Source: Phaeosaccion multiseriatum (Eukaryota > Protista > Ochrophyta, other classes). From it: a stretch of DNA of 64,000 nucleotides. Both the position numbers and the translations under genes were made by a program. This document shows positions 10,501 through 57,515 of this stretch, piece by piece (position 1 is the first letter of the stretch; each line of letters opens with the position of its first letter). Under the pieces are notes generated by a model. The model did not search any database and was not told the origin of the DNA. It saw only the letters and a program-made list of their open reading frames with translations. Location: positions 248,001-312,000 of the forward strand of contig OZ218957.1 of assembly GCA_965112735.1 (NCBI GenBank), read 5' to 3'.

Positions 10501-11170
10501 AGCACAGTCATCTCTGACACCAGGTCGCACTACCCCCCCGCTCCTTGCGGTCTTGGACCCCCCCTGGCTGCCGGCCCCGTCGCGATTCGTCTCGTTGGCG
10601 ACGATTCGCTTGATGAGGGCTGAGTACACCAACACGCTGCTGTTGCGCACGGCCCAGGAGGGGTCCTCGAAGCCCGCCATGCACGTCACCACGGCGCGGC
10701 TTACGTACGGCCCGATGCAACACGCCAGCGCGGAGTCCGAAAACACGAGCCGCAGAGTGTTGAGCGCGTGCACTCGGGAGCGGTTCTTGCTGGTGCTCTT
10801 GGTACTGGTGTTGGTGCTCTTGGTACTGGTGTTGGTGCTGTTGGTGTTGCTAGGAACACCTGAGCACCCTCCACCTCCATCTGAGGAGGAGCAGCCAGTC
10901 GAAGAAACTGAAGCTGCAAGTGGGGCCTCGGTCACAGGTGGCGACGCCCAGAGGAGCAGACTATCCATGGCGGTGGTGAGTAAGTCCCCCCCTTCCCTCT
11001 TCTGCTCCTTGGGCCTCGTCTTGAGGAGGGCTAAGAAGGCCGCTGCCAGACCGGAGCTGCGCCGGAGGACGAACTGAACATTCATTGTACGCACGCGCGC
11101 CACCCCCCCCCACACACACAAAGAGGAGGTAGCGACAGAAGCAGATACACACACGTAAGCAAGCACGCAC

Positions 11171-11210
<40 letters not shown>

Positions 11211-14200
11211 ACACAATGAGAGGGCGACGACGACGACGACGATATTTCCCGTGAGCAGAAGAGCGTTGGACAAATGGGATGGGGCTGCGCACAAGTCTCT
11301 CCTACGCAAGAGGCTGAGAGGCAACGCCCGCTCTTCACGCTCCTCTCCTCCCCTCTCCTCTCCTCTCCTCTCTTCTCTTCTCCTCTCCTCTCCTCCACCC
11401 TCCTCTCCTCTCCTCCCCACTATTCTCTTCTCTCCCCCCTCTCCTCTCCTCTCCTCTCCTTCCTTGTGCCGTCTTGACACCAATGCAGTGAACAACGGGT
11501 CCACTAAACTGAAGCTCATGCTCTGCCTTCCTCTCACCCCTCACGCCTCTTACCTCCTGCGAGCATGCCGACCCCCCCACCCTCTCCAGCAAGGCCTGAA
11601 GCCATTCCATAGGCAAGCGAGCCGCGTCGCTGACCGTCTGTCCGCGCTTGCCCCCCCCCCCCTGATGAAGCTGCAGCAGTTGTGCAGCCACCTTGCAGAG
11701 ACTTGCTTGGGTCAGGGCCACGCCCCCCATGTGGTGCAGCTGCAGCAGCGCGTTGAGCAGTTGTGATCCGATGCTGCGCACGTCTTCGCAGCTCAGAAGG
11801 GCCACAGCACCGCCGTCGCCAATCTCATTGCTCTCACTACCACCATCCACCCTCTCCTCCCCTTCCTCCTTCTCCTCCTGCTCGTCCCCCTGCATGAGGG
11901 TGTGCCTGAAGGGTACGCTGCATACAAGTTGTCCGAGGCCTGACGTCGCCTCCCTCACAAGCAGCCACGCACACACCACCAAGCGCTGGCAGGCAGACGG
12001 GGCAAGGCGGAGGGGCAACAAGGGTATGTGCGGGTGTGGGGTGCCAGGAGGGAAGGAAGGGGGGGTGGGGGTTGGGCATGAATGTGGGGCAGGAGGGAAG
12101 GACGGGGGCATGGCTGCGGTGGGATTGTGAGGGTGGGGGTGCAGCAGTTGGTGATTCGATGTGGGTGTGAGTGGACATTGTGCCTCCACTCTCCCGAGGG
12201 GAGAGAGGGAGGGAGATTCGGGTGTAGGAAGCAATGAGAGCCCTCATCATCACCATCATCACCATCATCACCATCATCACCATCATGGGCTGCTGGATGT
12301 GGCTACGCTACGCTAAGCCCATACACATCCCTTACATCCGCCTTCTTCCCTCCTTCCCTCCCTCCCTCCGCCCTTCCCTCCCTTCTTCTCTCCCACCCTC
12401 TCTCCTTCCCTCCCTCCCTCCCACTCACCCACCCACCCACCCACCTGCTTTCTTGCGTCGTCCCCCCCCATCCTCTGCTGTACCGGCCGCCCTTGTCCAT
12501 CTACTTTCACCTCCCCGCGGTGCTGATTCGCGTTCTTGGGTACACGGCTCCGTCCACTGCCATCCCCACCCCCACTCCCTCCCTCCCCGTCAACTGCCAT
12601 CCCTCCCTCCCTCGCCTCCTCCTCCTGGACCCGAAACTCACCTCCCCCGCCTCCCTCCCCGTCCTCCTCCCCCTCCTCTTCCTCCTCCTCCAGCCCACCC
12701 ACCACACTGAGGGCAGCCCTTAGTGCGGCCTGCATCAAGGATCTGACGTCACGCACCAGCCCCAACGCCCGCTGTGCCCTCTCGCCCCCCTGGGACACGC
12801 CCCCCTGGGACAAGTCCAGCCCCCCGGGGGACAGCACCTCTCGCAGGGCCAGCAGCAGCCCGTGGGGGAGAGGAGCAGAAGTGGCACTGGCGACAGCTTC
12901 ACCAGCTGGTGATACAGCAGTTGGTGATATAGCAGCGTCGTCCTCCTCGTGGCCGGTGCTCATCGGCGTGGGAAGAAGCTTGCGCGCCTCTTGCTGCTGC
13001 CTCTGCTGCCCCTGACCCATGCAATGCTCCTCCCCCCCCGGAGCACTACCCCCGCCCCCTGGGCCTGCCTTCCCCTTCTCCTTCTGCCAGCACGAGAGCA
13101 GCTGCGGCGTGACGGCGTCAAGTCGGGCCTGTGCGGCGGCGCAGAGTCCCTCTGTGAAGCTCATGAGCTCGTCCCATCCGCCGCCTACGGTATCAACAAC
13201 TGCTGGGCTTTGTCGGGCCTCCTCCACCCCCCCACTTGTTGCCGCCGCCCCCTCCCTCGGGACGACTCCCACAATCTCCCGCCCTGCCGCATAACTCGAC
13301 CCATCAGCAGCAGTTGGTGATACGGTGACTGTGACGCTCCAGCGTAGATGCAGACAGTATACCTCCCCCACGAGCCTCAGCAGGGCCGCCCCTGCCTCTC
13401 CCTCGTGCTGCCTCGGCCTTCCGCATAGCCACAGCCCCCTCTGCACCAGCAAGGCCACCTAAGACAGATGGCAGTGGATGGCAGATGGCAGTGGGTGGCA
13501 GATGGGAGTGAAAGGCAGTGGAGGGACGCCAGATGGTGGAAATCGGACGGAGGGGAGGGGTGGGGAGGGAAATGAGGATGAGGGAAGGGAAGGGGGGAGA
13601 CGGATATGGGGGGCTACCTCGCCTCGCTTTACACCTCCCACCGTCACCACTACTCTTACCACTACCACGACAAGCGCCGCCGCAAGCCCCCCTCACCTTG
13701 TCTGGGCTGCTGTACCCGGGTAGGGGGCGTGGGAAGTCCCTTCTCAGCAGCTGCAGCGCCAAGAGTCGACTCCGCTCCCACGTGCTGCTGAGAAGGGCGA
13801 CCAACGCGTCCACGCTCCACGGGGTGAACACAGACCGCTCCAGCGCTGCCCACAGGGGCACAGAGCCGCTTGAGGGAGAGGGAGTGGTGATGGCGCTTGC
13901 AGTGGTAGTGGTGGTAGAAAGAGGAGGAGGAGGAAGGGGATGGCCGTGAACGGGGCCCGCCACCTGCAGCACCTTAGCGACGCTGACGGTGAGCAGCTCT
14001 ACCACCAACCGCTCCCTTTCAAAGGGCGCCCCGGGGTACAGGCTCTGCACGAACAGTGCCCACACCCACGCCATGAGGTCCTGACACCTCGTGATGACCG
14101 CTTTGCTCTCAGCGGCTCGACTCTTCTCCGCTGCCGCTGCTGCTGCTGCTACTACTCCGTGCCTCTTCGGGTCCGTGCCCTGCTGCCCCTGCCCTCTGGC

Positions 14201-16824
14201 CTTGGCTTCAGCCTTGGCAAGGAGACTCACGTGGAAGTGCAGAGAGGCACACAGCCTGGTGAAGAGGGTCTGCATGGCTCGCTTCAGGCTCTCCTTGTAC
14301 CACCCCGTCGGCGTCTTGAGCGAGTAGCGGAAGGAAGAGCGGAACACCGCCTCCTCTCCCTTGCTGGGCAGACTGGTGGTGCGTGCGTGATTGCAGAATA
14401 GCCCCAGTGCAGACATACGCACCTCCTCCGCCCCGTGAAGCAGCCCCTGCCGCAGAGAGCTCAGAGGCACGATACAGCACTCCTTCTCCCCATCCACTGC
14501 CATCCCTCCTCCTCCTCCTCCTTCCCTCGTGCCCACAACGAGCACTGGGGCTGGGCGGCCCTTCTTGGTGGGAGGTGGAGAGGATCTGAGCAAGCGCCCT
14601 ACCTCCAGCAGAGCCCACAACTGCCGTGCCTCCAAGGAGACCAGCTCGCCCTCCTGGTGTTGGTGTTGGTGTTGGTGCACCGCCTGCCAGCTGTGACCCT
14701 GCTCCTGCTCCTCCTGCCCCTGCTGCAAGGCCCTAATGTCCTTGGCGAGTGCCCGTGCCGCCTCCCACCCGGTCTGAAGCAGCGAAGGCAGCACGTTCTC
14801 TGCCACTTTGCTGCGCAGTCTGTGGCTCTCGGACGTTAGGGCCAGCGCCAGGGGCCGCGTCCAGAGAAGAGCCGACTTCCGACACGCCGCGAGTTCGATC
14901 CTTGCCTCCGCCTCCGCCGCCGCTGTTGCTGCTGCTGCTGCTGGCTTGTTGCGTGCCCTCTTGGACTTGGAGCTACGGCCTTCCCCTCCACGTTCCCCTT
15001 CCCCTCCTTTGGACTTGTCCCCTCCTTTGGAGCTGCTGCTGCTGCTGCTGCTGCTGCTGGGCGGTTCTGAGGGCTCCGACGGCGGAGGGCCCCCACCCGC
15101 TGCGAGAGCCTCTCGCTCATCTTGCAGGAACTGAACCCCCGACGGACAGAGACGCGTACAAGACAGACACATACGACAAATGGACACATGGGCGCAGACG
15201 AAGTGAGCGCGGTGCGTAAGCGCTTCCCTCCTCTCCTCTCCCCTCCGCAGGAGTTAGTCCCTCCTCTCCTTTCCCCTCCCCGTAAGTCTGCGGTGCTCTC
15301 CCCATCAGTGGCTGCCTGCCCCCCTCCTTTCTGCCTGTGTCCTGGTCAGTGCCTATGGACTCGTACCGTCACTACCCACGTCACCTGCTCACATCTTTCT
15401 CACCTACGTACACTGCTCACTCACGTCACTGCCTATGTCAATGACTAAGCTTACGTCTGTACACGTGTCTTTCCTTACCTCTTTGTGCGCAGTGCTGACG
15501 AGCGTGAGGATGACCTCAGTGGCCATCTTGGACACAAAGTTGGGCCCCCCAAAGTCCTGCAGCAGCCGAGTCACCAGCAGCGGCCGCACGGACAGCAGCC
15601 GCCGACTACCCATGGAGGGGATGAGCAGCCTTAGCAGCAGGTACTTGCTGCGGAACGAGACAGGAAGCCCCAGCACGCGGCTCTCCAGCCCCACGCTCTC
15701 TTGCCCCGCCCCATGCCGACTCGGAAGGCCTCCTTCCCCCCCTTCTCCTCTTCTTCCAGCTGCTGTACCACCAACAGCTGCATCACCAACAGCTGCTGCT
15801 GTCTCCCTCAGGGCCAGGATTTTGAGGAAGATGGCGCTGACGGACATCTTGCAGATTGGGTCCCAGGACCCCAACACGAGGCCTATGCAGCGCTCCAGCA
15901 GCGAAGACATGTCCGAGTGTGCCTGCGCAAGTACCGTCGCTCCTCCTCCTCCTCCTCCTGCTGCTGCTACTGGTGTTGCTGTTTCCTTTACTGCATGGAG
16001 CTCCAGGACGAGCTCCGCATGTGCCTTGACACGCCCAAGGAGCTTGTCCACGCACTGCGAACAAAGGAATATGGGGACACAGGAATATGGGCGTACAGGA
16101 ATGAATATACACAGGACATAGGCATAGGTAGCACACGGTCAGAAACAGAGTGAGCAAGGAGAGGGTCAGTTGGAGCTGGCCATTGTCTCTGGCGAGGAGT
16201 ACTGAGTACAGGGCGAATCGCTCGACTCGGCTCGGCAGAGCGCATGTAGGGAGGTGATCAATGAACTTTGAAGAGGACAGGTAGAGGCAGCAGCCGCGAC
16301 TCTCCCTCCAAGAAGAGCATGTCTGCGGCTGCAGGGCACTCTACCTCCTTCCCTCCTTCTCTCCTTCCCTCCCCCCCTCCCCTCCCCTCCTGACCTGGAA
16401 CGCTGCGAGTCTGGCAAGGGGGGTCGTGTTGTGGCACAGCTCGAGAGCACTCTCCGCCAGCGGCCCGTACAGCAGGCACGTGGAGACGCGAGGGGGGCCC
16501 GGGCTAGCGGTTGGTGCTTCAGCGCTTGGGGGTACGGCAGCTGTGAGCACGCGCACGTCCAAGGCACTGAGCAGGCTAAAGCACAACGCAGCCGCGGAGG
16601 ACGGGGGCAGGGTCCCGCTGCTGCACAACCCCAGGGGGGCGCTTCCGGCCCATATGCCTCTAGAATGAGCATTACCCCCGCCCTCTTCCTTTCCCTCCTC
16701 CTCCTCCTCCTCCTCGTCGGCCGCCACCCCGGGAAAGAAGGTTCTGAAGAACGGTCCTGCTCCGATACTGGCGAGGGGGAGTGGGCTCTCCTCCTCCTCC
16801 TCCTGCTTGCCTCGATCCATACCA

Positions 16825-19397: not shown

Positions 19398-22300
19398 ATG
19401 GCGACGTTCTTCTCATTGGCCTCGTCGGCAGCTCTGCTCCTGCTGCTTCTGGTGGCGCCATCGAAAAGTGAGTGTGGATATGCACGGGGCCCGTGGGTTG
19501 CGCCCAAGGAAGGAACAAGTATGGAAGGAGCCGGATCTTTAGAACAAATCTTTGACCCTGTCGCCCCACCACTACCGGCAGCTGCAGAGCTTACCCCTCC
19601 TTCCTCTCCTCAGGCAGTGGCTGATGCTGAAATCATAGCTGAGGGAAGCGGCCGAGAGAAGAACAACAACGTGGCCAATCTCGCGTGTGTTCCTGCCTGC
19701 TTTTCTTGACTTTCACCCCCCCCCCCCCCCCAGTCGTGGACGCTGGGGCTGAGATCGTGGCCGATATTCCCGAGCCAAACCTTCGCGAGGGATGCTCCCC
19801 GCGATGTGTGAACACTGCTGATGAAGGGCAATACAGATGCGATATCGATGCTTCTGGGAACCTGCTCTGCAACACCTTCGAGCTCTCAGGTAAGCCCTCC
19901 TCTCTCTCTGTGCCCAGGAATGCACCCCCTTACTCCCCTCCTTAGCTAGCTAGTACTACGTTCAACTGATTCATGTGGGCAACCCTGGCTGCCTCACCTT
20001 GCTTGTTGCCTGCTTTGTGCTCATAGGACCGCACACGTGCCACTTTCACTACTATACCGCCGATGAAGTCGCCCAATGCATGGCAGAGAAACGTGAGTGA
20101 CTTGCTCCTCCCCTCATCCCCTCCTGTGGATGGGCATCGTCAGACACGAAATCAGACTCTCCACCCTGCCTCCCTTGGGCCGGGCGGGGGCATTGCGTGG
20201 CTGTGTGACTGCCTGCTGGCCTTGCTTAGCTACATCCTCTGCCTCTCTGTGACCGTCTATCCCTTCCTCCCCCTCGCTCTGTCTGTCGCTCCGCCCTCGC
20301 TCTCCCTCCCTCTCCCTCTCCCCCTACCTCTTGGCACTTGGCACTTCCCCCCGCCCCCCCTGCTGCGTGCCTCCTCCTCTCTCTCCGTGTGATCTGGTGG
20401 CTGTGTCAATCTGAGCAGGAAGCTCTGTGGGCAGCGACGCCCCCTACACCCTCATCATTATGGGCTCCTCGATTCTCATGGGCAGCATTTTCACAGTCGC
20501 GCCGTGGGTGAGTGCGTGGGGCGGGGGTCGAGGCCCCAGAGGCTGGGTGGCCTTTTCTTCATGCCCAGGCAGAGAGGAGGAGAGCTCAAGGGGAGAACCA
20601 TAGCTACACGGGTGCTCTCGCTCCCTCCCGTCTTCCCTCCCTGTCCTCGCTCCCTCCCTGCCAAGAACGGAAGTTGATGGGGAGTCCGAAGCGAACGGCA
20701 CACGCACGCACCGTCTGGTGCGCTTTACCCCTGGTGACCTACTGTCTGACCGGTCCCTCCCTCCCTCGTCCCTCCCTCTCTCCCTGTTGTCCCTCGTAGC
20801 TCGTCAATGAGATCGACTCTGACTTCGACTACCAGCCCTGGATGTTCGACCCACTCCCCCCACAGCCGAGCGCCAACCCAATGGACAACTGTGCCCAGAT
20901 GGTCCTTGACGCGCAGCTCGGCCTCGTGGCAAAGAAGGCCGACGTGAACGAATCTCCCGAATGCGTGCAGGTGGGTTGCGTGAGGAGGTTTTCCCCTCCC
21001 TACTGCCCGGGCCCCCACTTCCACGTGCGCTGGCGGTGAATCGCCGTGAAGGCTTCACCGTCTCTCTCTCCCTCCCTTTGACTTATCCCCGTTGACCTCC
21101 CTTCTATCTTTCACTTTCTCACCCCCCGCGGCAACCTCCACACCCCACAGGTGTACGAGCACAGCATGGCAGGGGACTCCGCGGACACGGGGGAGGCTTC
21201 CTTCCTCGGCGACGCCAGCATCGTGTGGGCCTCTGCGCCATCCCCTGACAAGATGCAGCAGCAACTTGACCTGCTCACAGAGGCAGGACGGGACCAGGAC
21301 CACGGGCATATGGTTCTGTACCTCGGGCTGTGGTACACCTTCTGCCTGCAGGGGAGGGAGTGGGCCTGCAACATCCTGCCCGAGGGGGCGGCGCTGAGGG
21401 TTTTGAGGGGGGAGTCGCTTGCCGCTCAAGTGTCCTTCTTTGAGGGCAAGTACGCTACTTTGGTGCAGCGCATCCTCAGCGACTTCCCCAACTACGAACT
21501 GACCATCACGGGGCTACGGCGGTACTCGGACATCACCAGGGCCTACGATGACACCGTCAGACAAGTAAGTCACTGAGTCAATGGACACACTCCATGAGAC
21601 AAGTGACTGACTGGCATGAGGAGGATTGCTTCGAGTGGTGAAAGTGGTGTGGAACCGGGCGGGAGGGAGCAGGATGAGTGGAGGTGGGGCACGAGGAAGG
21701 GACGGGATGACTGAGAGGGAGGGAAGAATGGACTCGCCCTTCGCGCATGAGCTGGTGTGATTCGTGTGCGTGTGTGTGCGTGTGTGTGCGTGTGCGTGCG
21801 TGCGTGCGCGCGTGTGTATGCTTGGGTGGGTAGGAGGCGAGGGAGAAGGACAGTATGTAGAGACACGTCAGCTCCAACCTACTTCTGAGGAAGCGGCGGT
21901 TTTTTTCTGTCGAGATGCCTCGAACCCTCTTATTCCCTGAGGGCTGTTATATTCATTCCTCTAATTCATCTGTCTTGCCCCCTCCCCCTCCCCCCGCCCG
22001 CCTCACTGTCCACCCTTCCGCCCCCCCGCCCTTCGCCCCGTGCACCTCCCTTCGTTCCCTCCCTCCTTGCCTGCCCCCTCAGCTTGCCGCGAGCAGAGCC
22101 GTCAATTTCCTCAACTTGGATGGAACCACGCAGCTCAGGCCCCACCAGCCCGATGACATTAGCAATCATCCCCCCCACGTGGTGAACCATTCCTTATTCC
22201 AACGCTACATGGCTCCCATCTGTGAGGGCACCAGCGTGGGGGAGGCGCAGGAGTGCGAGGAGGAGGTGAGTCAGTCAGCTAGTCGGTCAGTCAGACAGGC

Positions 22301-23583
22301 GGTCGGTCAGTCAGGTAGACAGTCAGTCGGTCAGTCAGTCAGGCCGTCCCGTTTGTCTTGTGGTCACCCGCCGCGCCCTTCCCATTCACGTGATGTATGT
22401 ACCGCTCTTCCTCCCTACGCTCATTCCTACCCTCCCCCTCGCCCACTCTCCCCGTTGCTCTGGCCAGATGGTGGGTTCCCCCGGCTGCCAAACCGAGACG
22501 TACGACAACCCTGACGGCCGTTGGTTCGAGCAGTACAGCCGCGGTTGCGACATTAAGACCTTTACGTCGCCTCTCGGCACCGTGCTCCCCCCCGCCGTCC
22601 TCTTCTCGGCGTGCCCCCTCAACACGCCCAATCTGTTCCTCAACCCCAACTTGGACGAGAGCTTGGTGCCCTGGACGAGCTTCGCTCTGCTCTCTGCGGG
22701 TGTGCTGGACGCCTCCATTACCCACGTTACGGAGGCCGGCGATGGAGGCGCTCGCTTCACCATTAACACCGCCGGAACTGCCGACTGGCACATGCAGCTC
22801 TTTCAAGTGCTGCCTCCTGAGGACCTCACGTTGGGCGAGACCATGACGGTGAGCTTCGAAGTGACGGCCGAAGAGGGGGAGGCGGGAAGCACTCGGGCGG
22901 TCTTCCCGTACATTCAGCAGCTTGAGGCCCCGTGGAGGCCGTTTGTGTCGGGGCGGTGTGAAGTGCGCCCCTCGGGCCCGACCACATGCAGCGTCACTGC
23001 AACTCTGACGGACGTTACAGTGCCTGTCAAGTTCGGCATCCAGGGGGGAGCGTCTGACGTCGATTTCACGGTGCACGGAGCTTCGCTGTGTCGCACTGAT
23101 GACACCGTCGGATCCCCTGTGAACGTCCTGTTCGTGAATCCGGACTTCACAGATGGCCCTCTGAGCAATTGGGTTCCGTTTGTGTACATAGGCTCTGCCC
23201 CCGGTGTGGAGGGCGCGTGGACTTTCAGCGACGACGGCGCTGAACTCAACATTCTCGCCGTGGCCGAGGGCCCGACAGAGAGCTGGCACGCGCAGATGCA
23301 CCAGGACTTTTACCTCAGCAGCGTCGGAGTGGGTACATACATGGTTGCTTTTGAGGTGTCGGCGCCGGACGGGGACTTCCCCATCGACGTGTACGCACAG
23401 CAGTCGCAGGGTCCCTACAGGGTCTTCGGTAGCAACAAGTGCATGGCTAAGCAGGAGCGAGCGTGGTGCGTTGCAGAGGCGGAGGTGGATGACGTGTCGG
23501 GCTTGATCAAGTTCGGTGCACAGGGTGGTGACAACGTCGGTAAGGTGGTGCTACACAGAGCGGCGCTTTCCAAGATAGCCTGA
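19398..23583 (+). CDS. Secreted SGNH/PC-esterase-like protein with two CBM4/9-like modules, paralogue A (exons 19398-19467, 19734-19889, 20027-20092, 20419-20507, 20800-20970, 21151-21564, 22083-22265, 22468-23583)
   Basis: Signal peptide and 7 phase-consistent GT-AG introns. CHFHYYTADEVAQCM...LIIMGSS and C-terminal DDISNHP...YMAPIC resemble the CASD1/TBL GDS and DxxH blocks. NLFLNPNLD..W..GTADWHMQLFQ..LTLGETMTVSF resembles the CBM_4_9 pattern. Confidence 0.8.
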
Positions 23584-23907
23584 GACGGAAATTTTGTACT
23601 GGATGGTCATCCCCTAAGGTGGTAACATTTTCGTGGTACACGGGCATAGCCAAGAGGAGATGCTGAGGGACGTCGCTGTTAGCGCTCCTCAGGAGTGACT
23701 CGCCCGATGTCTCGGCCTCGGCCACAGCTTTGTCAAAGTGCCAACCACAATTTTGATTTACTTCGAAGTAGTTAGTAAAGCGAGGCTACATAATATGTAC
23801 ATACATTTATTTTACCTGCGATAAGAGGGCCTCTGTACATTGCGGGAGCGTGATTGATCCGCTCCAAATACGATACAAGTCTCCGTGGACTGCCATCCTA
23901 CCCATCC

Positions 23908-24960
23908 TTCCTATCCTACATGAGGGTGGGGAAGGGTGCGGGGGTCCCCTCGCGATAGTGGCGAGGCACCGCCCCGCCCCCAAGCGATACGGAGCGGAAC
24001 CGCCGCGCCCTCCCTGCAGGGGGGGGAGGGGGGAGGGGAAGGGCTGTTACGCCAGCACAAGTAGGCCCGGCAAGGAGAGTACAGAGGGTAGTAGACTACC
24101 CCGCCGCTTGCGCGCCCCTCCTCGCTCCATCTAACTGCTCCCACCTACCGGACCCCTCCACCACCTCTGCCCACTCTCCCCTCTCACCACTCCCGGCCCA
24201 CACACATCCACTGCCATCCCTCCACCACGCACCGCACCTGGCTGCTGGACAACGTGCTGGTCGAGGGAGACGAGCAGGGGGAGACCGGCCAAAACAAGCA
24301 CCACAGTTCCGATCCGCCTGTACAGGGAGCTAACGAAGAGGAGAGCCACTATCTGGCCAAAGGGCGGCGCTTCTGTTGCCTCCGGAGGTCACGGAGGTCG
24401 ACGAGCGACGTCGACAGTTCCTGCCTGCGCCCGCTGCCTCACACCAGCCAAGCGCGGCAACAAGCTCTGCCTCGGCCGACCCGGTGCCTCCGTTCTTCTT
24501 CTAGCGGTTCCCGCACTCTCGTAGCGCTACGGCAGAGTTTTCCTACCGGGATCACTTCTGGTGTTCCCGCCAGCCAGCCCACCCCGGTCGTGCTACTACC
24601 TAGGCCTAGCCTAGTTCGCTACCCTCGTTGTTACCGCCCTCTCTGCCCGGCTGTTGCTCCTGCTGCTGCCGCTGCTGCCTGTACAGCCATGACCACGGCC
24701 GAGCTCATGTCTTCTATGCCCTTGCTTGTTGCTTGCCCTCGCTCCATGCTCAACTCGCGCACAAAGTCGGTGAAGGCGTTCGCCCTCCGACCCAGCCATC
24801 CTCTCGCTACTTCATCAATCGTTTTGCTTGCTTTGTTGCAGCCAGAAGGCGGCGGGATTTGGCTTTGTAGGGTGCTGCGTCTCCTGGCTGCTGGTGCTTC
24901 TTCTTGTTCCCCTGGCTGCTGGTGCTCCTTTCTTACTGCGGGCGGTGGCGATGGTCTTTG
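23908..24960 (-). pseudogene. Deleted duplicate of the RNFT1-like RING gene
   Basis: Homologous to 33681-35600. At ~23970-23985 sequence matching ~33735 joins directly to sequence matching ~34670, losing ~0.93 kb with the TM and RING coding region. There are further indels and an in-frame stop in the exon 1 equivalent. Confidence 0.85.
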
Positions 24961-25129
24961 ACATGTCTTGATAACCGCAGCAGCCAGGAGGCTTGGGGGT
25001 TGAGAAGCGCCGCCAGCCTGGCTGTTTGTTTGTCGCACCAATGATTGTGTGGCTGATCTCTGAGATGATGATCGTTCCGTGTGGGGGTGGTCGATGCTGA
25101 CGAGCTTTTCGTGAAAGCAGCACCCACCC

Positions 25130-25217
25130 ACATAGCTACACACACATCCAACACACATACACACATCCAACACACACATCCAACACGCATACACACATCC
25201 AACACACACGCAGGCAC

Positions 25218-25251
<34 letters not shown>

Positions 25252-25390
25252 GCACGCACACGCGCACACACACATACACACACACGCACACACACACACA
25301 CACGCACTCACTTATATATATATACATATCTGACTGACACACACACACATACACACGCACACACACACACACACATACACACACATACAC

Positions 25391-25442
<52 letters not shown>

Positions 25443-25495
25443 GCACGCGCACACACACACATACACACACATCTGACTGACACACAAAACACACA
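25130..25495 (+). repeat. Imperfect (CA)n microsatellite near the duplication junction
   Basis: Read directly. Confidence 0.9.
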
Positions 25496-25724
25496 GAGAA
25501 CTTATTTTTGGTCCTTCTCAAAGCCTAGTCAGAAGAGTTTTTGAGAGGAGTGGCGCCAAAACTTGGGGTATTCGTTGCCATTGGGGTTCAATTTGACAGC
25601 AATTTTTAATTCAATTTTCTTTGTGTTGGAAAGCCGGGCCCGCCCGGCGCCCCGCAAAGCTTTAGAGCAAAAGTCCCCCACGCTCCAGCACGGAACAACC
25701 CATCCGCACAAGAGGTGGGGCGCT

Positions 25725-28700
25725 ATGACGGCGTTCTCCTTTTCGGCAGCTCTGCTCCTGCTGCTTCTGGTGGCGCCATCGAAAGGTGGGTGTGTATTGT
25801 TGACTTGCGCCCAAGAACCCAAGGAAGGAAAACCTCTCCCCCTCATTCCCCTGCAAAACTAGTCTATACTTGACTCAAGGCGCGATGGTGAGCTGGGCCA
25901 CAGTTTCCAGTGATGGCTGGTGCTGAACTAATTGAAGCGAAAACGCACGGCCCGGCCGGGCCTCGCGGCCAACCTCGCGTATGTTCCGTGCTTTTGTTTC
26001 ATCCCCCCCCCCCCCCAGTCGTGGACGCTGGGGCTGAGATCGTGGCCGATATTCCCGAGCCAAACCTTCGCGAGGGATGCTCCCCGCGATGTGTGAACAC
26101 TGCTGATGAAGGGCAATACAGATGCGATATCGATGCATCTGGGAACCTGCTCTGCAACACCTTCGAGCTCTCAGGTAACCCCTTCCTCTCTCTCTTTACC
26201 CCCAATAATCCCCCCTTCTCCCCTCCTTAGTACTACGTTTAACTGATTCATGTGGGCAACCCTGCCTGGCTGCTCGCCTTGCCTGCTTTGTGCTCATAGG
26301 ACCGCACACGTGCCACTTTCACTACTATACCGCCGATGAAGTCGTCCAATGCATGGCAGAGAAACGTGAGTGACTTCCTCCCCTCATCCCCTCCTGCGGG
26401 TGGGCATCGTCAGACACGAAATCAGACTCTCCACCCTGCCTCCCTTGAGGAGCATTGCGTGGCTGTGTGACTGCCTGCTGCCACTTAGCTACATCCTCTG
26501 CCTCTCTGTGACCGTCTATCATCTCTTCCTCCCCCTCGCTCTGTCTGTCGCTCCCTCCCTCTCCCTCTCCCTCCCTCTCCCTCTCCCCCTACCTCTTCCA
26601 CCCCCCCTGCGTGCCTCTCTCTCTCCCTGTCATCTGAGCAGGAAGCTCTGTGGGCAGCGACGCCCCCTACACCCTCATCGTTATGGGCTCCTCGGTTCTC
26701 ATGGGCAGCATTTTCACAGTCGCGCCGTGGGTGAGTGCGTGGGGCGGTTGGCCTTTTCTTCATGCCCAGCCAGAGAGGAGAAGAGCTCAAAGGGAGAACC
26801 GTACACGGGTGCTCTCCCTCCCTTCTTCCCTCCCTGTCCTCGCTCCCTCCCTGCCAAGGGAAGTCGACGGGAGGCGAACAGCACACGCACCCACCATCTG
26901 GTGCGCTTTATCCCTGACCTGCTGACTGACCGGTCCCTACCTCCCTCCCTACCTCCCTCCCTCCCTCTCTCCCTGTTGTCCCTCTTAGCTCGTCAATGAG
27001 ATCGACACTGACTTCGACTACCAGCCCTGGATGTTCGACCCACTCCCCCCACAGCCGAGCGCCAACCCAATGGACAACTGTGCCCAGATGGTCCTTGACG
27101 AGCAGCTCAGCCTCGTGGCAAAGAAGGCCGACGTGAACGAATCTCCCGAATGCGTGCAGGTGGGTTGCGTGAAGGAGTTTAGTGCATTCATGCTTCCCTC
27201 CCTCCTTACCTCCCGGGCCTCGACTCCCACGTGCGCTGGCGGTGAATCGCCGTGAAGGCTTCACCGTCTCTCCCTCCCTCCCTATATCCCCGTTGAACTC
27301 CCTTCTCTTTCACTTTCTCACCCCCCGCGCCAACCCCTACACTCCACAGGTGTACGAGCACAGCATGGCAGGGGACACCGCGGAATCGGGGGAGGCTTCC
27401 TTCCTCGGCGACGCCAGCATCGTGTGGGCCTCTGCGCCATCCCCTGACAAGATGCAGCAGCAACTTGACCTGCTCACAGAGGCAGGACGGGACCAGGACC
27501 ACGGGCATATGGTTCTGTACCTCGGGCTGTGGTACATCATCTGCCTGCAGGGGGGGGAGTGGGCCTGCAACCTCATGCCCGAGGGGGAGGACCTGAGGGA
27601 TTTGAGGGACGAGTCGCTTGCCGATCAAGTGTCCTTCTATGAGGGCAAGTACACTGCTTTGGTGCAGCGCATCCTCAGCGACTTCCCCAACTACGAACTG
27701 ACCATGACGGGGCTACGGCGGTACTCGGCCATCACCAGGGCCTACGATGACACCGTCAGCCAAGTAAGTCACTGAGTCAATGGACACACTCCATGAGACA
27801 AGTGACTGACTGACTGACTTACTGACTGACCCTCCCCTCTCCCCCCCGCCTCACTGTCCACCCCTCCGCTCCCCCGCCCTTCGCCCCGTGCACCTCCCTT
27901 CGTTCCCTCCCTCCTTGCCTGCCCCCTCAGCTTGCCGCGAGCAGCGGCGCCAATTTCCTCAACTTGCATGGAACCGCGCTGGGCAGGCCGAATCAGCCCG
28001 ATGACATCAGCAATCATCCCCCCCACGTGGTGAACCATTCCTTATTCCAACGCTACATGGCTCCCATCTGTGAGGGCACCAGCGTGGGGGAGGCGCAGGA
28101 GTGCGAGGAGGAGGTGAGTCAGTCAGCTGGTCGGTCAGTCAGACAGGCGGTCGGTCAGTCAGGTAGACAGTCAGTCGGTCAGTCAGTCAGGCCGTCCCGT
28201 TTGTCTTGTGGTCACCCGCCGCGCCCTTCCCATTCACGTGATGTATGTACCGCTCTTCCTCACCTCCCGCCCCCCCTCCTTCCTACGCACATTCCTGCGC
28301 ACTCTCTCCGTTGCTCTGGCCAGATGGTGGGTTCCCCCGGCTGCCAAACCGAGACGTACGACAACCCTGACGACAATTGGTTCGAGCAGTACAGCCGCGG
28401 TTGCGATATCAAGACCTTTACGTCGCCCCTCGGCAGCACGCTCCCCCCCGTCGTCGACGTGTCGGCGTGCCCCCTCAACACGCCCAATCTGTTCCTCAAC
28501 CCCAACTTGGACGGGAGCTTAGAGCCCTGGACGAGCTTCGCTCTGCTCTCTGGTGTGCTGGACGGCTCCATTACCCACGTTACGGAGGCCGGCGATGGAG
28601 GCGCTCGCTTCACCATTAACACCGCCGGGACTGCCGACTGGCACATGCAGTTCTTTCAAGTGATGCCTCCTGAGGACCTCACGTTGGGCGAGACCATGAC

Positions 28701-31700
28701 GGTGAGCTTCGAAGTGACGGCCGAAGAGGGGGAGGAGGGAAGTACCCGGGCGGTCTTCCCGTACATTCAGCAGGCTGGGGCCCCGTGGATGGCATTCGCG
28801 TCGGTGCCTTGTGAAGTAAGCCCCTCGGGCCCGACCACATGCAGCGTCACTGCAACTCTGACGGACGTTACAGTGCCTGTCAAGTTCGGTATCCAGGGGG
28901 GAGCGTCTGACGTCGACTTTACGGTGCACGGAGCTTCGCTGTGTCGCATGGATGACACCGTCGGATCCCCTGCACCTACGCCTGCGCCTACACCTGTGGA
29001 GACTGACCCTCCTGACACCGTCGGATCCCCTGCACCTACGCCTGCGCCTACACCTGTGGAGACTGACCCTCCTGACACCGTCGGATCCCCTGCACCTACG
29101 CCTGCGCCTACACCTGTGGAGACTGACCCTCCTGACACCGTCGGATCCCCTGCACCTACGCCTGCGCCTACACCTGTGGAGACGGACCCTCCTGACACCG
29201 TCGGATCCCCTGCACCTACGCCTGCGCCTACACCTGTGGAGACGGACCCTCCTGACACCGTCGGATCCCCTGCACCTACGCCTGCAGCCTTCGACCCCTC
29301 CTGCCCCCTCAACACGCCCAATCTGTTCCTCAACCCCAACTTGGACGTGAGCTTGGTGCCCTGGACGAGCTTCGCTCTGCTCTCTGCGGGTGTGCTGGAC
29401 GGCTCCATTACCCACGTTACGGAGGCCGGCGATGGAGGCGCTCGCTTCACCATTAACACCGCCGGGACTGCCGACTGGCACATGCAGCTCTTTCAAGTGC
29501 TGCCTCCTGAGGACCTCACGTTGGGCGATACCATGACGGTGAGCTTCGAAGTGACGGCCGAAGAGGGGGAGGAGGGAAGCACCCGGGCGGTCTTCCCGTA
29601 CATTCAGCAGCTCGAGGCCCCGTTCAGGCCGTTTGTGTCGGGGCCTTGTGAAGTAAGCCCCTCGGGCCCGACCACATGCAGCGCCACTGCAATTCTGACG
29701 GACGTTACAGTGCCTGTCAAGTTCGGCATCCAGGGAGGAGCGTCTGACGTCGATTTCACGGTGCACGGAGCTTCGCTGTGTCGCATGGATGACACCGTCG
29801 GATCCCCTGCACCTACGCCTGCGCCTACACCTGTGGAGACGGACCCTCCTGACACCATCGGATCCCTTGCACCTACGCCTGCGCCTACACCTGTAGAGAC
29901 TGACCCTCCTGACACCGCAGGATCCCCTGCACCTACGCCTGCGCCTACACCTGTGGAGACGGACCCTCCTGACACCGTCGGATCCCCTGCACCTACGCCT
30001 GCGCCTACACCTGTGGAGACGGACCCTCCTGACACCGTCGGATCCCCTGCACCTACGCCTGCGCCTACACCTGTGGAGACGGACCCTCCTGACACCGTCG
30101 GATCCCCTGCACCTACGCCTGCGCCTACACCTGTGGAGACGGACCCTCCTGACACCGTCGGATCCCCTGCACCTACGCCTGCGCCTACACCTGTGGAGAC
30201 TGACCCTCCTGACACCGTCGGATCCCCTGCACCTACGCCTGCGCCTACACCTGTGGAGACGGACCCTCCTGACACCGTCGGATCCCCTGCACCTACGCCT
30301 GCAGCCTTCGACCCCTCCTGCCCCCTCAACACGCCCAATCTGTTCCTCAACCCCAACTTGGACGAGAGCTTGGTGCCCTGGACGAGCTTCGCTCTGCTCT
30401 CTGCGGGTGTGCTGGACGGCTCCATTACCCACGTTACGGAGGACGGCGATGGAGGCGCTCGCTTCACCATCACCACCGCCGGGACTGCCGACTGGCACAT
30501 GCAGCTCTTTCAAGTGCTGCCTCCTGAGGACCTCACGTTGGGCGAGACCATGACGGTGAGCTTCGAAGTGACGGCCGAAGAGGGGGAGGAGGGAAGCACT
30601 CGGGCGGTCTTCCCGTACATTCAGCAGCTCGAGGCCCCGTTCAGGCCGTTTGTGTCGGGGCCTTGTGAAGTAAGCCCCTCGGGCCCGACCATATGCAGCG
30701 CCACTGCAATTCTGACGGACGTTACAGTGCCTGTCAAGTTCGGCATCCAGGGAGGAGCGTCTGACGTCGATTTCACGGTGCACGGAGCTTCGCTGTGTCG
30801 CATGGATGACACCGTCGGATCCCCTGCACCTACGCCTGCGCCTACACCTGTGGAGACGGACCCTCCTGACACCATCGGATCCCTTGCACCTACGCCTGCG
30901 CCTACACCTGTAGAGACTGACCCTCCTGACACCGCAGGATCCCCTGCACCTACGCCTGCGCCTACACCTGTGGAGACGGACCCTCCTGACACCGTCGGAT
31001 CCCCTGCACCTACGCCTGCGCCTACACCTGTGGAGACTGACCCTCCTGACACCGTCGGATCCCCTGCACCTACGCCTGCGCCTACACCTGTGGAGACGGA
31101 CCCTCCTGATACCGTCGGATCCCCTGCACCTACGCCTGCGCCTACACCTGTGGAGACTGACCCTCCTGACACCGTCGGATCCCCTGCACCTACGCCTGCG
31201 CCTACACCTGTGGAGACTGACCCTCCTGACACCGCCGGATCCCCTGCACCTACGCCTGCAGCCTTCGACCCCTCCTGCCCCCTCAACACGCCCAATCTGT
31301 TCCTCAACCCCAACTTGGACGAGAGCTTGGTGCCCTGGACGAGCTTCGCTCTGCTCTCTGCGGGTGTGCTGGACGGCTCCATTACCCACGTTACGGAGGA
31401 CGGCGATGGAGGCGCTCGCTTCACCATTAACACCGCCGGGACTGCCGACTGGCACATGCAGCTCTTTCAAGTGCTGCCTCCTGAGGACCTCACGTTGGGC
31501 GATACCATGACGGTGAGCTTCGAAGTGACGGCCGAAGAGGGGGAGGAGGGAAGCACTCGGGCGGTCTTCCCGTACATTCAGCAGCTCGAGGCCCCGTTCA
31601 GGCCGTTTGTGTCGGGGCCTTGTGAAGTAAGCCCCTCGGGCCCGACCATATGCAGCGCCACTGCAATTCTGACGGACGTTACAGTGCCTGTCAAGTTCGG

Positions 31701-33372
31701 CATCCAGGGAGGAGCGTCTGACGTCGATTTCACGGTGCACGGAGCTTCGCTGTGTCGCATGGATGACACCGTCGGATCCCCTGCACCTACGCCTGCGCCT
31801 ACACCTGTGGAGACGGACCCTCCTGACACCGTCGGATCCCCTGCACCTACGCCTGCGCCTACACCTGTGGAGACTGACCCTCCTGACACCGTCGGATCCC
31901 CTGCACCTACGCCTGCGCCAACACCTGTGGAGACTGACCCTCCTGACACCGTCGGATCCCCTGCACCTACGCCTGCGCCTACACCTGTAGAGACTGACCC
32001 TCCTGACACCGTCGGATCCCCTGCACCTACGCCTGCGCCAACACCTGTGGAGACTGACCCTCCTGACACCGTCGGATCCCCTGCACCTACGCCTGCGCCA
32101 ACACCTGTGGAGACTGACCCTCCTGACACCGTCGGATCCCCTGCACCTACGCCTGCGCCTACACCTGTAGAGACTGACCCTCCTGACACCGTCGGATCCC
32201 CTGCGCCTACGCCTGCGCCTACACCTGTGGAGACGGACCCTCCTGACACCGTCGGATCCCCTGCACCTACGCCTGCGCCTACACCTGTGGAGACGGACCC
32301 TCCTGACACCGTCGGATCCCCTGCACCTACGCCTGCGCCTACACCTGTGGAGACGGACCCTCCTGACACCGTCGGATCCCCTGCACCTACGCCTGCAGCC
32401 TTCAACCCCTCCTGCCCCCTCAACACGCCCAATCTGTTCCTCAACCCCAACTTGGACGAGAGCTTGGTGCCCTGGACGAGCTTCGCTCTACCCTCGGGTG
32501 TGCTGGACGGCTCCATTTCCCACGTTACGGAGGAAGGCGATGGAGGCGCTCGCTTCACCATTAACACCGCCGGGACTGCCGACTGGCACATGCAGCTCTA
32601 TCAAGTGCTGCCTCCTGAGGACCTCACGTTGGGCGAGACCATGACGGTGAGCTTCGAAGTGACGGCCGAAGAGGGGGAGGAGGGAGCGGTCTACCCGTAC
32701 ATTCAGCAGGCCGCCTTCCCGTGGATGGCATTCGCGATGGGGCCTTGTTGGGTAAGCCCCTCGGGCCCGACCACATGCACCGCCATTGCAACTCTGACGG
32801 ACGTTACAGTGCCTGTCAAGTTCGGCATCCAGGGGGGAGCGTCTGACGTCGACTTTACGGTGCACGGAGCTTCGCTGTGTCGCATGGATGACACCGTCGG
32901 ATCCCCTGTGAACGTCCTGTTCGTGAATCCGGACTTCACAGATGGCCCTCTGAACAATTGGGTTCCGTTTGTGTACATAGGCTCTGCCCCCGGTGTGGAG
33001 GGCGCGTGGACTTTCAGCGACGACGGCGTTGAACTCAACATTCTCGCCGTGGCGGAGGGCCCGACAGAGAGCTGGCACGCGCAGATGCACCAGGACTTTT
33101 ACCTCAGCGGCGTCGGAGTGGGTACATACAGGGTTGCTTTTGAGGTGTCGGCGCCGGACGGGGACTTCCCCATCGACGTGTACGCACAGCAGTCGCAGGG
33201 TCCCTACAGGGTCTTCGGTAGCAACAAGTGCATGGCTAAGCAGGAGCGAGCGTGGTGCGTTGCAGAGGCGGAGGTGGATGACGTGTCGGGCTTGATCAAG
33301 TTCGGTGCACAGGGTGGTGACAACGTCGGTAAGGTGGTGCTACACAGAGCGGCGCTTTCCAAGATAGCCTGA
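25725..33372 (+). CDS. Secreted SGNH/PC-esterase-like protein with six CBM4/9-like modules and Pro/Thr mucin-like linkers, paralogue B (8 exons, last exon 28324-33372)
   Basis: Same exon/intron structure as 19398-23583. The last exon encodes five type-A modules separated by (DTVGSPAPTPAPTPVETDPP)n linkers, plus one type-B module ending AALSKIA*. Confidence 0.82.
28954..32398 (+). repeat. Coding 60-bp minisatellite in four blocks (5, 8, 7 and 10 full units), interleaved with ~490-bp CBM module repeats
   Basis: Unit gacaccgtcggatcccctgcacctacgcctgcgcctacacctgtggagac(t/g)gaccctcct, counted line by line. Confidence 0.97.
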
Positions 33373-33680
33373 GACGGAAATTTTGTACTGGATGGTCATC
33401 CCCTAAGGTGGTAACATTTTCGTGGTACACGGGCATAGCCAAGAGGAGATGCTGAGGGACGTCGCTGTTAGCGCTCCTGAGGAGTGACTCGATTCGCCCC
33501 ATGTCTCGGCCTCGGCCACAGCTTTGTCAAAGTGCCAACCACAATTTTGATTTAGTAATATTAGTAAAGCGTGTACAATAAACGGAGAAGATGGCCTGTG
33601 TACATTGCGGAGGCGTGATTTATCCGCTCCAAATACCTTACAAGTCTCCGTGGACTGCCATCCTACCCATCCTGCCTATC

Positions 33681-35457
33681 CTACATGAGGGTGGGGAAGG
33701 GTGCGGTGGTCCCCTCGCGATAGTGGCGAGGCACCGCCTCCCCCCAGGCATCCTCTCCGACGGTCTGGCGGCAGATGGGGCAGCACGTGCCCTGCCGATA
33801 GAGCCATTCGCCGATGCAGTCTCGGCAGAACAGGTGGCCACAGTCCAGCCGCGCCGTCGCTCGGGCCCGAGCACTGAGGGCCTCGTGACAAATGCTGCAG
33901 TCGGGGTCAGCAGCGCCCGCCACCTCCTGAGGGGTGGCCAATCGACCGCGGTGTCCTGACACCAGCCCCCCGCTACAGCAGCCCCACCCTGCGAGAGCAA
34001 CCCCCTTGCCGAGGCGACACACCTGTCCCCCCTTCAGCGCCATGTAGACAAGCAGCAGCGAGTAGTCTAGCCACAATGCCTCGCCCTTCAAGGGGTCGGG
34101 CTTGGAGTCGTGGGTGAGCAGGTAGGCCCCCCACAGCGGCACAGGCAGCAGCGAGCGGTAGAGGGTAGACGCCATCTCCAGCAGGGCAAGGGTGCGGAGT
34201 TTCACCACTGGTGACCCCGGGGGGGCTCCCCTTCCTCCAGCCCTCCTCTCCCCTCCCTCTCCTCGCAGCCACGTTGCCCTCGTCTCTCCTCGCAGCCAGG
34301 CCAGCGAGGGCAGAGAGGATGGCAAGAGTCCTGACACCAGCAGCGCCTTGGCGGCCACCACTAAACACCTCGCCAGCAGGTCGGTGAAGTAAACGGACCG
34401 CGCCACGTCGAGGAAGGCAGCAGAGGGCAAGGGGAAGCTCCTCGAAACCGGCAGTAGCGCCAGCCTGCGCCACAAGCCCGTCAAAGGCCGTACTTGCAAG
34501 CCTTGCAAACTGTTGCTGTTGTTGCTGCTGCTGCCCATGAGCCATGCCAAGACGGTGCCGGTGTCGCTGTCGCTGCCGCCGCTGCTGTCATTGGGGCCAG
34601 AGGAGAGGAGCATGTATGTGCAGACGCAGGCGTACAGGGCACAGAGCCCGAGGTGGAGCAACCCCTGTCCCAAGCGATACCGAGCGGAGCCGCCGCGCCC
34701 TCCCTGCAGGGAGGGGAGGGGGGAGGGGAAGGGCTGTTACGCCAGCACAAATAGGCCCAGCAAGGAGAGTACAGAGGGTAGTAGACTACCCCGCCGCTTG
34801 CGTGCCCCTCCTCGCTCCATCTAACTGCTCCCACCTACCGGACCCCTCCACCATCTCTGCCCACTCTCCCCTCTCACTCCCGGCCCACACACATCCACTG
34901 CCATCCCTCCACCACCGCACCTGCTGGACCACGTGCTGGTCGAGGGAGACAAGTAGGGGGAGACCGGCCAAAACGAGCACCACAGTTCCGATCCGCCTGT
35001 ACAGAAAGCGAACGAAGAGGAGAGCCACCATCTGTCCAATGGGACCCATGTTGTCACGCTCTTGCGCGACCCTAACCCCCCCCCCCCCTTGCTGCAGCGC
35101 CTGCTCTTCTTGGCGGTGCCGCTGCTGCCTCCGGAGGTCACGGAGCTCGACGAGCGACGTCGCGAGTTCCTGCTCCCGCTGCCTCACAAGCGCGGCAAGC
35201 TCTGCCTCGAGCCGGTGCCTCCGTTCTTCTTCCAGCGGTTCCCGTACCGCTACGGCGGAGTTTTCCTGCTGGGCATCACTTCTGTTCCCGCCACCCCCGT
35301 CGTTGACACCCGTGCTCCCTTGGTCATTGCCGCCCTCCCTGCCCGGCTGTTGCTCCTGCTGCTGCCGCTGCTGCCTGTACATCACCACGAGCTCATCTCT
35401 TTTGTACCCTTGCCCTCCATGCTTGCGCACAAAATCGGTGAAGGCGTTCCGGCCCAT
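33681..35457 (-). CDS. RNFT1/RNFT2-like multi-pass membrane RING E3 ubiquitin ligase (exons 35457-34921, 34703-33681)
   Basis: C3HC4 RING CSICHE...LDCGHLFCRDCIGEWL...CCPICR. Family-like segments LEMASTLYRSLLPVPLW and C-terminal YREGTT. Several TM helices. Phase-0 GT-AG intron. The start codon is inferred. Confidence 0.85.

Positions 35458-36012: not shown

Positions 36013-36018
<6 letters not shown>
35963..36018 (-). repeat. (GGCTGA)9 hexamer repeat whose first TGA is the EML stop codon
   Basis: TCA on the + strand at 35965 and every 6 nt up to 36013. Confidence 0.9.

Positions 36019-57515
<21,497 letters not shown>

Follow-up and report, generated by a model that had tools for sequence, protein, structure and literature searches.

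Tandem genes of the alga Phaeosaccion multiseriatum coding for secreted proteins with CBM4/9-type modules and a candidate esterase-like head

Carbohydrate-binding modules (CBMs) of the CBM4/9 kind have mostly been studied in bacterial glycoside hydrolases, and the CBM4 set used for comparison here comprises CBM4-2 of Thermotoga maritima Lam16A (1gui), CBM4-2 of Rhodothermus marinus Xyn10A and Cellulomonas fimi CenC (1gu3/1ulo). A second group of relevance is the PC-esterase family PF13839 (plant TBL/XOAT1, Cas1p/CASD1, NXPE/FAM55 and PCED1/FAM113), whose described features are signal peptides, an extra helix-0, a GDS motif, a tryptophan or histidine in place of the SGNH asparagine, the lack of a GxND motif, a DxxH motif and a bracing pair of cysteines (PMC2824669). 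Those PC-esterases that have been characterised, XOAT1 among them, act as O-acetyltransferases in the Golgi, and SGNH enzymes with appended β-sandwich CBMs are well known in bacteria, namely CE2, RiCE17 (C-terminal CBM35) and AlgX (C-terminal type-B CBM) (PMC9487903). Here we describe two tandem paralogues on the forward strand of a 64,000-nucleotide (nt) stretch of DNA (the window, whose numbering is used throughout) from Phaeosaccion multiseriatum (GenBank assembly GCA_965112735.1, contig OZ218957.1, positions 248,001 to 312,000). Gene 1 (19398-23583, beginning with its ATG) and gene 2 (25725-33372, ending with the final base of its stop codon) have predicted products of 754 and 2,062 residues. 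They are two recent duplicates in the nuclear genome of a GC-rich alga (about 60% G+C, GC), and code for secreted modular proteins in which a leader is followed by a head region (exons 2-7) and a tail of CBMs (exon 8).

The last exon of both genes encodes β-sandwich CBMs of the CBM4/9 kind, an assignment put forward in the preliminary description of this locus and borne out by the agreement of Pfam, a PDB profile search, AlphaFold modelling with Foldseek, and the ESM Atlas. Following a lead-in of 48 residues are modules of two types, A and B, which are about 36% identical to each other; a single module of each type is found in gene 1, against five A modules (85-94% identical to the A module of gene 1) and one B in gene 2. 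The Pfam model CBM_4_9 (PF02018) matches the gene 2 piece 32401-33369 with 27.9 bits against a curated cut-off of 25.9 (E 3.3e-6); for single modules the matches are borderline, four of the eight being recovered, all below the cut-off (best E 6.7e-5). In the PDB, a profile built from all eight modules had 1gui_A, the CBM4-2 of T. maritima laminarinase 16A, as its sole match (E 7.8e-4), with an alignment that includes the WHMQ strand. Single-sequence AlphaFold prediction of the whole of exon 8 was too poor for use (predicted local distance difference test, pLDDT, 42.8), and a run on the 8-row alignment of the modules was used instead. The resulting model of the B module (pLDDT 75.1, predicted template-modelling score 0.74) has a β-sandwich jelly-roll fold nearest to solved CBM4 structures, with 1gui_A as the best Foldseek match (E 3.8e-8, template-modelling (TM) score 0.67), followed by CBM61, CBM4 and CBM22 entries. 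Shape matches in the ESM Atlas are bacterial hydrolases bearing CBM_4_9 (TM 0.68-0.75), and 25 of 30 matches from its feature search carry this domain.

A profile word search recovered two environmental proteins, P0003 and P0004 (E 2.8e-14 and 2.7e-10; 34-37% identity), of which P0003 itself matches CBM_4_9 (E 4.3e-5). These proteins share with the algal modules an N-P-x-F...W start, an invariant tryptophan, a QxxQ motif, two cysteines and a KFGIQGG strand. Because the Pfam, PDB profile, fold and Atlas lines agree and these features are held in common, the modules constitute a small CBM4/9 subfamily. No sequence relatives of the modules came to light other than P0004 and P0003, which are encoded on Joint Genome Institute (JGI) metagenome contigs L001 (1-989) and L002 (1-983) respectively; word searches with the open reading frame (ORF) of exon 8, including a run restricted to the modules, gave no relatives in the range of 240-765 residues. 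In P0004 a signal or lipoprotein-like leader comes first, then a Cys-rich stretch and a linker rich in Pro, Glu and Thr, and then the module; in P0003 the module is preceded by the end of another β-sandwich-like domain, and the stop codon is followed by 445 nt devoid of an ORF.

Compared with the bacterial CBM4 modules, those of the alga are eukaryotic, are joined to a head that is not a glycosidase, and form a subfamily of their own, with two invariant cysteines and a KFGIQGG strand otherwise seen only in the two environmental proteins; gene 2 also differs in carrying five tandem A copies on Pro/Thr repeat linkers. The structural neighbours of the modules bind β-1,3-glucan, β-1,4-glucan, xylan or xyloglucan chains, and the modules combine an invariant tryptophan (in WHMQ) with a variable aromatic loop. 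Among the six A modules (22612-23106 and 28468-32895), 11 of the 35 variable columns fall in one loop (alignment columns 111-126), which reads QQ(L/A)(E/G/A)(A/F)P(W/F)(R/M)(P/A)F..., aromatic residues included.

Comparison of the paralogues, by DNA alignment and a check of the boundaries, establishes a common predicted structure of eight exons and seven introns for both genes, with identical phases and GT..AG ends at all 14 introns (Table 1). This agrees with the earlier count of seven introns in the esterase-like part against an intronless CBM part: the head has six internal introns and a junction intron, and the last exon, carrying all CBM-like modules, is uninterrupted in both copies. Exons 2-7 (1,079 nt) align without a single indel column, against 31% gap columns in the introns, and mismatches between the copies amount to 4.7% in the exons overall and 11.5% in the introns. 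GC by codon position is 0.61/0.46/0.77, which is a coding pattern, and the 5,049 nt of gene 2 exon 8 form a single open frame. Intron 7 is assigned as an intron because its 202 nt in gene 1 would shift the frame and stop the protein ahead of the CBMs, and because an 8-nt indel distinguishes the two copies within it. We therefore rejected its reading as coding sequence, which the gene 2 version (210 nt, in frame and stop-free) would allow; ORF finders indeed run from exon 7 through intron 7 into exon 8 of gene 2 (an ORF of 1,802 residues). Retention of this intron in gene 2 would accordingly leave the protein untruncated. An (AGTC)n tetranucleotide array lies within intron 7 of both copies. As for the signal peptide reported earlier, a predicted secretory leader, judged by its hydrophobicity, is present in exon 1 of both copies; in gene 1, residues 4-21 have a mean Kyte-Doolittle hydropathy of 2.2.

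The Cys-rich lead-in and the short motifs from which an SGNH/PC-esterase-like head had been proposed were all located in both copies on the forward strand (Table 1). In the head they form a collinear set, namely IIMGSSILMG in exon 4, MVLYLGLW in exon 6 and DDISNHP in exon 7, with cysteines at both ends (exons 3 and 7). The first of these resembles block I of the SGNH enzymes (LIIMGSS in one copy, LIVMGSS in the other), with a serine at the position of the nucleophile and a further serine replacing the aspartate of GDS. VLYLGLW fits the pattern in which tryptophan or histidine replaces the SGNH asparagine, a positional equivalence drawn from the pattern and not from an alignment or structure. 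The cysteines of exon 3 (TCHF...QCM) and exon 7 (APIC) are, by their position, a candidate bracing pair. When residues were shuffled within exons the ordered set recurred in 4.6e-4 of trials, a figure that is a rough upper limit on significance as the patterns were written after seeing the sequence; singly, block I was obtained in 2%, block III in 8% and the D..H string in 69% of shuffles. The head would resemble the PC-esterases in being secreted or luminal with a signal peptide, in having a Cys pair near both domain ends, a serine block I after a hydrophobic strand, a tryptophan at the SGNH asparagine position and a histidine block near the C-terminus, all by comparison of motifs. It differs in showing no detectable similarity to the family model, in having GSS versus GDS and DxxxH versus DxxH, in its fusion to CBM4/9 modules instead of AT3, EGF, filamin or ATP-grasp domains, and in belonging to a protein that looks fully secreted, unlike the characterised Golgi enzymes. 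One member of the PC-esterase family is known to have NxxxH, with the block shifted by one residue (PMC2824669). The fit to the published features is good in kind, but imperfect in the two catalytic motifs.

These observations suggest that the head is most likely a PC-esterase-like member of the SGNH superfamily, acting through a Ser-His(-Asp) acyl-enzyme mechanism on a glycan held by the CBMs, a reading to which we assign about an even chance. The head would then be the working part of the protein, with the second serine of IIMGSS as the proposed nucleophile, the tryptophan of LGLW helping to build the oxyanion site and the histidine of DDISNHP serving as the general base. The CBMs would keep the enzyme attached to a β-glucan- or xylan-like chain in soluble or amorphous form, from which the head would remove O-acetyl groups, or on which it would move them. 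As the protein is predicted to be secreted and has no AT3 donor partner, an esterase or transacetylase would be likelier than an acetyl-CoA-dependent transferase. If the head is SGNH-like, the proteins would share with CE2, RiCE17 and AlgX an acetyl-esterase or transferase domain held on a polysaccharide by a jelly-roll CBM, which is C-terminal in RiCE17, AlgX and the algal proteins alike. The bacterial proteins have canonical GDSL/SGNH or AlgX-family domains and one CBM, whereas the algal ones have a head unrecognisable by sequence, a eukaryotic host and up to six CBMs. A full-text literature search found no paper combining PC-esterase, carbohydrate-binding modules and algae. The preliminary description knew of no earlier account of the architecture, a view that is correct only in part, given the bacterial SGNH enzymes with β-sandwich CBMs (PMC9487903).

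Several results weigh against an enzyme of this type. The head was searched exon by exon, with single exons only, which is a weaker test than one with the whole domain. Neither Pfam (at E<=1 and E<=10) nor NCBIfam returned PC-Esterase, SGNH or any other family for any head exon of either copy, the lone sub-threshold match being Pfam DSL on exon 2 (E 0.14-0.18); the PF13839 profile matched no exon at E<=10, and Pfam Lipase_GDSL did not match the head exons. Exons 4, 6 and 7 matched no sequence in the PDB, and the feature search of the ESM Atlas yielded nothing usable for exon 6. Exhaustive phmmer comparison of exon 6 (138 residues) with 1.84 billion representative proteins found no true relative; its two matches, a 3,880-residue bacterial repeat protein and a 344-residue tandem-repeat protein, were discarded as repetitive-protein artefacts. 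Pattern and tblastn searches likewise found no relatives of exon 6 in bacterial/archaeal genomes, viral contigs and metagenome contigs, or of exon 7 in viral contigs, the only set searched with it. Of the canonical GDSL/SGNH blocks, only the block I-like GSSILMG is seen, with no GxND and no DxxH; GSS stands in place of GDS, and DDISNH provides DxxxH as the only such motif in exon 7. Carbohydrate binding by the modules is itself a prediction. Finally, the four public sequencing runs that hold the locus (one sample, one study) cover introns and exons alike and so look like genomic DNA; the paralogue comparison is consequently the sole basis of the splicing model, and there is no RNA support for expression or splicing in these runs. 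Apparent joints in the reads were traced to cross-mapping between the two copies. In terms of these searches, the head appears to be a domain of about 360 residues devoid of detectable relatives, and of the SGNH/PC-esterase assignment made earlier it is the order of the motifs that stands, family, PDB and exhaustive searches of the head exons having provided no match. The evidence for an enzyme hence consists of short motifs.

The most serious alternative, which we regard as a substantial possibility if short of an even one, is that the head is a domain confined to its lineage, with a different or a new fold, and involved in some other glycan catalysis or in non-catalytic adhesion or recognition, its likeness to the esterase motifs being due to chance. 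The protein would then be a CBM-anchored extracellular protein of unknown chemistry. This would account for the failure of the head exons to find relatives in any of the family, PDB, Atlas or exhaustive sequence searches, for the alteration of both GDS and DxxH, and for the D..H-like string, which is expected by chance. The divergence of the copies points in the same direction: the head exons (19734-22265 versus 26019-28113) have 37 nucleotide differences in amino-acid-changing codons versus 3 in silent ones (binomial p 0.011; the count leaves out the indel-affected start of exon 1), a ratio that recognition proteins show more typically than housekeeping enzymes do. These changes cluster in codons 63-103 of exon 6, which hold most of its paralogue differences, and in codons 5-21 of exon 7, and the silent-site divergence of 1.2% is far below the 7-12% of introns 2-7. 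Against a chance resemblance, the ordered block I and block III-like motifs in a hydrophobic strand context are uncommon in shuffles even singly, and exons 4-7, judged by eye, have hydrophobic runs alternating with amphipathic stretches that read like five strand-helix units. Moreover, the commonest use of CBM4/9 modules is the tethering of a catalytic domain, and the Atlas listing holds fusions to glycoside hydrolases and esterases.

Should the esterase-like reading of the head be correct, it might, speculatively, be the founding member of a family of SGNH-like carbohydrate esterases or transacetylases that is restricted to its lineage, so far unrecognised and marked by a GSS/GLW/DxxxHP signature, a candidate new carbohydrate esterase (CE) family in CAZy. 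Such a family would be paired with interchangeable binding modules and be diversifying between young paralogues, as for an editor of surface glycans, be they self or foreign (those of bacteria, prey or competitors); this wider proposal is tentative and on balance doubtful. Whichever reading applies, the algal nuclear genes clearly encode CBM4/9 modules, up to six per gene, joined to a head that current family models do not recognise. An SGNH-like head would make the proteins a new eukaryotic variant of a known bacterial design, and a Ser-His acetyl-esterase or transferase would represent either a far-diverged branch of the enzymes that edit glycan acetylation or a new family of them, offering a handle on the algal modification of extracellular polysaccharides; otherwise they would provide a CBM-targeted domain of unknown chemistry. 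In either case the two genes offer a compact subject for expression and assay work.

A separate question is the origin of the modules, which bears on their history and not on function. The earlier suggestion of horizontal acquisition, taken here as a recent gain of the CBM exon from bacteria and its fusion to a resident gene, could draw on the contrast between this intronless exon and the intron-rich head, and on the fact that all recorded structural and Atlas neighbours of the modules are bacterial. It nevertheless now seems improbable: GC by codon position is near-identical in head (0.60/0.43/0.77) and tail (0.61/0.48/0.76), and pattern and tblastn searches with exon 8 detected no close relative in 185,579 bacterial/archaeal species genomes, viral contigs and metagenome contigs. 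The best relatives of the modules reach only the low identities given above and lie on 1-kb contigs of uncertain origin, and the Atlas itself cautions that its recorded taxa are no sign of transfer. The compositional and search data thus give no sign of a recent horizontal transfer; an ancient bacterial origin of the module family is possible.

It is very improbable that either gene, or the pair, is an untranscribed pseudogene or a product of faulty assembly in repeat-rich sequence. In favour of such a reading, no RNA run is among those holding the locus, the near-perfect 60-base-pair (bp) arrays of gene 2 are hard to assemble, and read coverage was examined for gene 1 only. Against it, each of the eight exons keeps an open frame in both genes, the splice sites are conserved and indels that shift the frame are absent; the long exon 8 of gene 2 is open throughout, and contigs of the four runs cover gene 1 at near identity.

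Table 1. Positions of exons, modules, motifs, repeats and flanking features in the window
Feature	Position	Strand	Description
Gene 1 exon 1	19398-19467	+	start codon and hydrophobic predicted secretory leader MATFFSLASSAALLLLLLVAPSK; phase-1 end; donor GTGAGT
Gene 1 exon 2	19734-19889	+	Cys-rich lead-in, 4 Cys; protein identical in both copies
Gene 1 exon 3	20027-20092	+	GPHTCHFHYYTADEVAQCMAEK; candidate helix-0, 2 Cys; no family match
Gene 1 exon 4	20419-20507	+	YTLIIMGSSILMG; candidate strand 1 and block I, GSS replacing GDS
Gene 1 exon 5	20800-20970	+	57 residues, 2 Cys, no recognisable motif
Gene 1 exon 6	21151-21564	+	138 residues; HMVLYLGLW as candidate strand 3 and W at the SGNH Asn position
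Gene 1 exon 7	22083-22265	+	VNFLNL...DDISNHP...YMAPIC; candidate strand 5, DxxxH block V, C-terminal Cys
Gene 1 exon 8	22468-23583	+	includes stop; 48-residue lead-in 22468-22611, A module 22612-23106, B module 23113-23580
Gene 2 exon 1	25725-25785	+	exons 1-7 (25725-28113) with the same structure and phases as in gene 1
Gene 2 exon 2	26019-26174	+	
Gene 2 exon 3	26300-26365	+	
Gene 2 exon 4	26642-26730	+	
Gene 2 exon 5	26989-27159	+	
Gene 2 exon 6	27350-27763	+	
Gene 2 exon 7	27931-28113	+	
Gene 2 exon 8	28324-33372	+	1,682 residues and stop
Gene 2 module A1	28468-28959	+	
Gene 2 module A2	29302-29796	+	
Gene 2 module A3	30319-30813	+	
Gene 2 module A4	31276-31770	+	
Gene 2 module A5	32413-32895	+	
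Gene 2 module B	32902-33369	+	
Repeat array 1	28953-29290	+	60-bp (20-residue) repeat DTVGSPAPTPAPTPVETDPP, 5.6 copies
Repeat array 2	29790-30307	+	same repeat, 8.6 copies
Repeat array 3	30807-31264	+	same repeat, 7.6 copies
Repeat array 4	31764-32401	+	same repeat, 10.6 copies
CHFHYYTADEV(A/V)QCM	20038; 26311	+	gene 1; gene 2
LI(I/V)MGSS	about 20460; 26683	+	gene 1; gene 2
HMVLYLGLW	21307; 27506	+	gene 1; gene 2
DDISNHP	22152; 28000	+	gene 1; gene 2
YMAPIC	22206; 28054	+	gene 1; gene 2
(AGTC)n arrays	22265-22342; 28112-28190		gene 1; gene 2
Duplicated 3' flank	23584-24685; 33373-33746 and 34669-35381		gene 1; gene 2
RING-finger ORF	33681-34673	-	intact-looking, 3' of gene 2
(AC)n microsatellite	25138-25471		imperfect, 334 bp
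THADA/Trm732-like gene	7525-15187	-	Pfam on ORF pieces
EML-like gene	36013-49588	-	double β-propeller; Pfam on ORF pieces

In gene 2 the four near-perfect repeat arrays (95-99% matches) form the linkers between the A modules. These linkers are 114-214 residues long, with 34% proline and 18-19% threonine, and make up a typical extended extracellular spacer that is probably O-glycosylated. The multiplication of modules in gene 2 took place inside one exon, plausibly via unequal exchange in these arrays.

No third copy of the gene was found within the window, and the neighbours on the reverse strand, a THADA/Trm732-like gene, the RING-finger ORF and an EML-like gene, are ordinary for a eukaryotic nuclear genome. 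The duplication includes the 3' flank, in which the gene 1 copy is without about 920 bp of the RING-finger ORF found 3' of gene 2. On the 5' side, the two copies have sequence in common from no more than about 85 bp ahead of their ATGs, and the microsatellite between the genes lies about 250 bp upstream of the gene 2 ATG.

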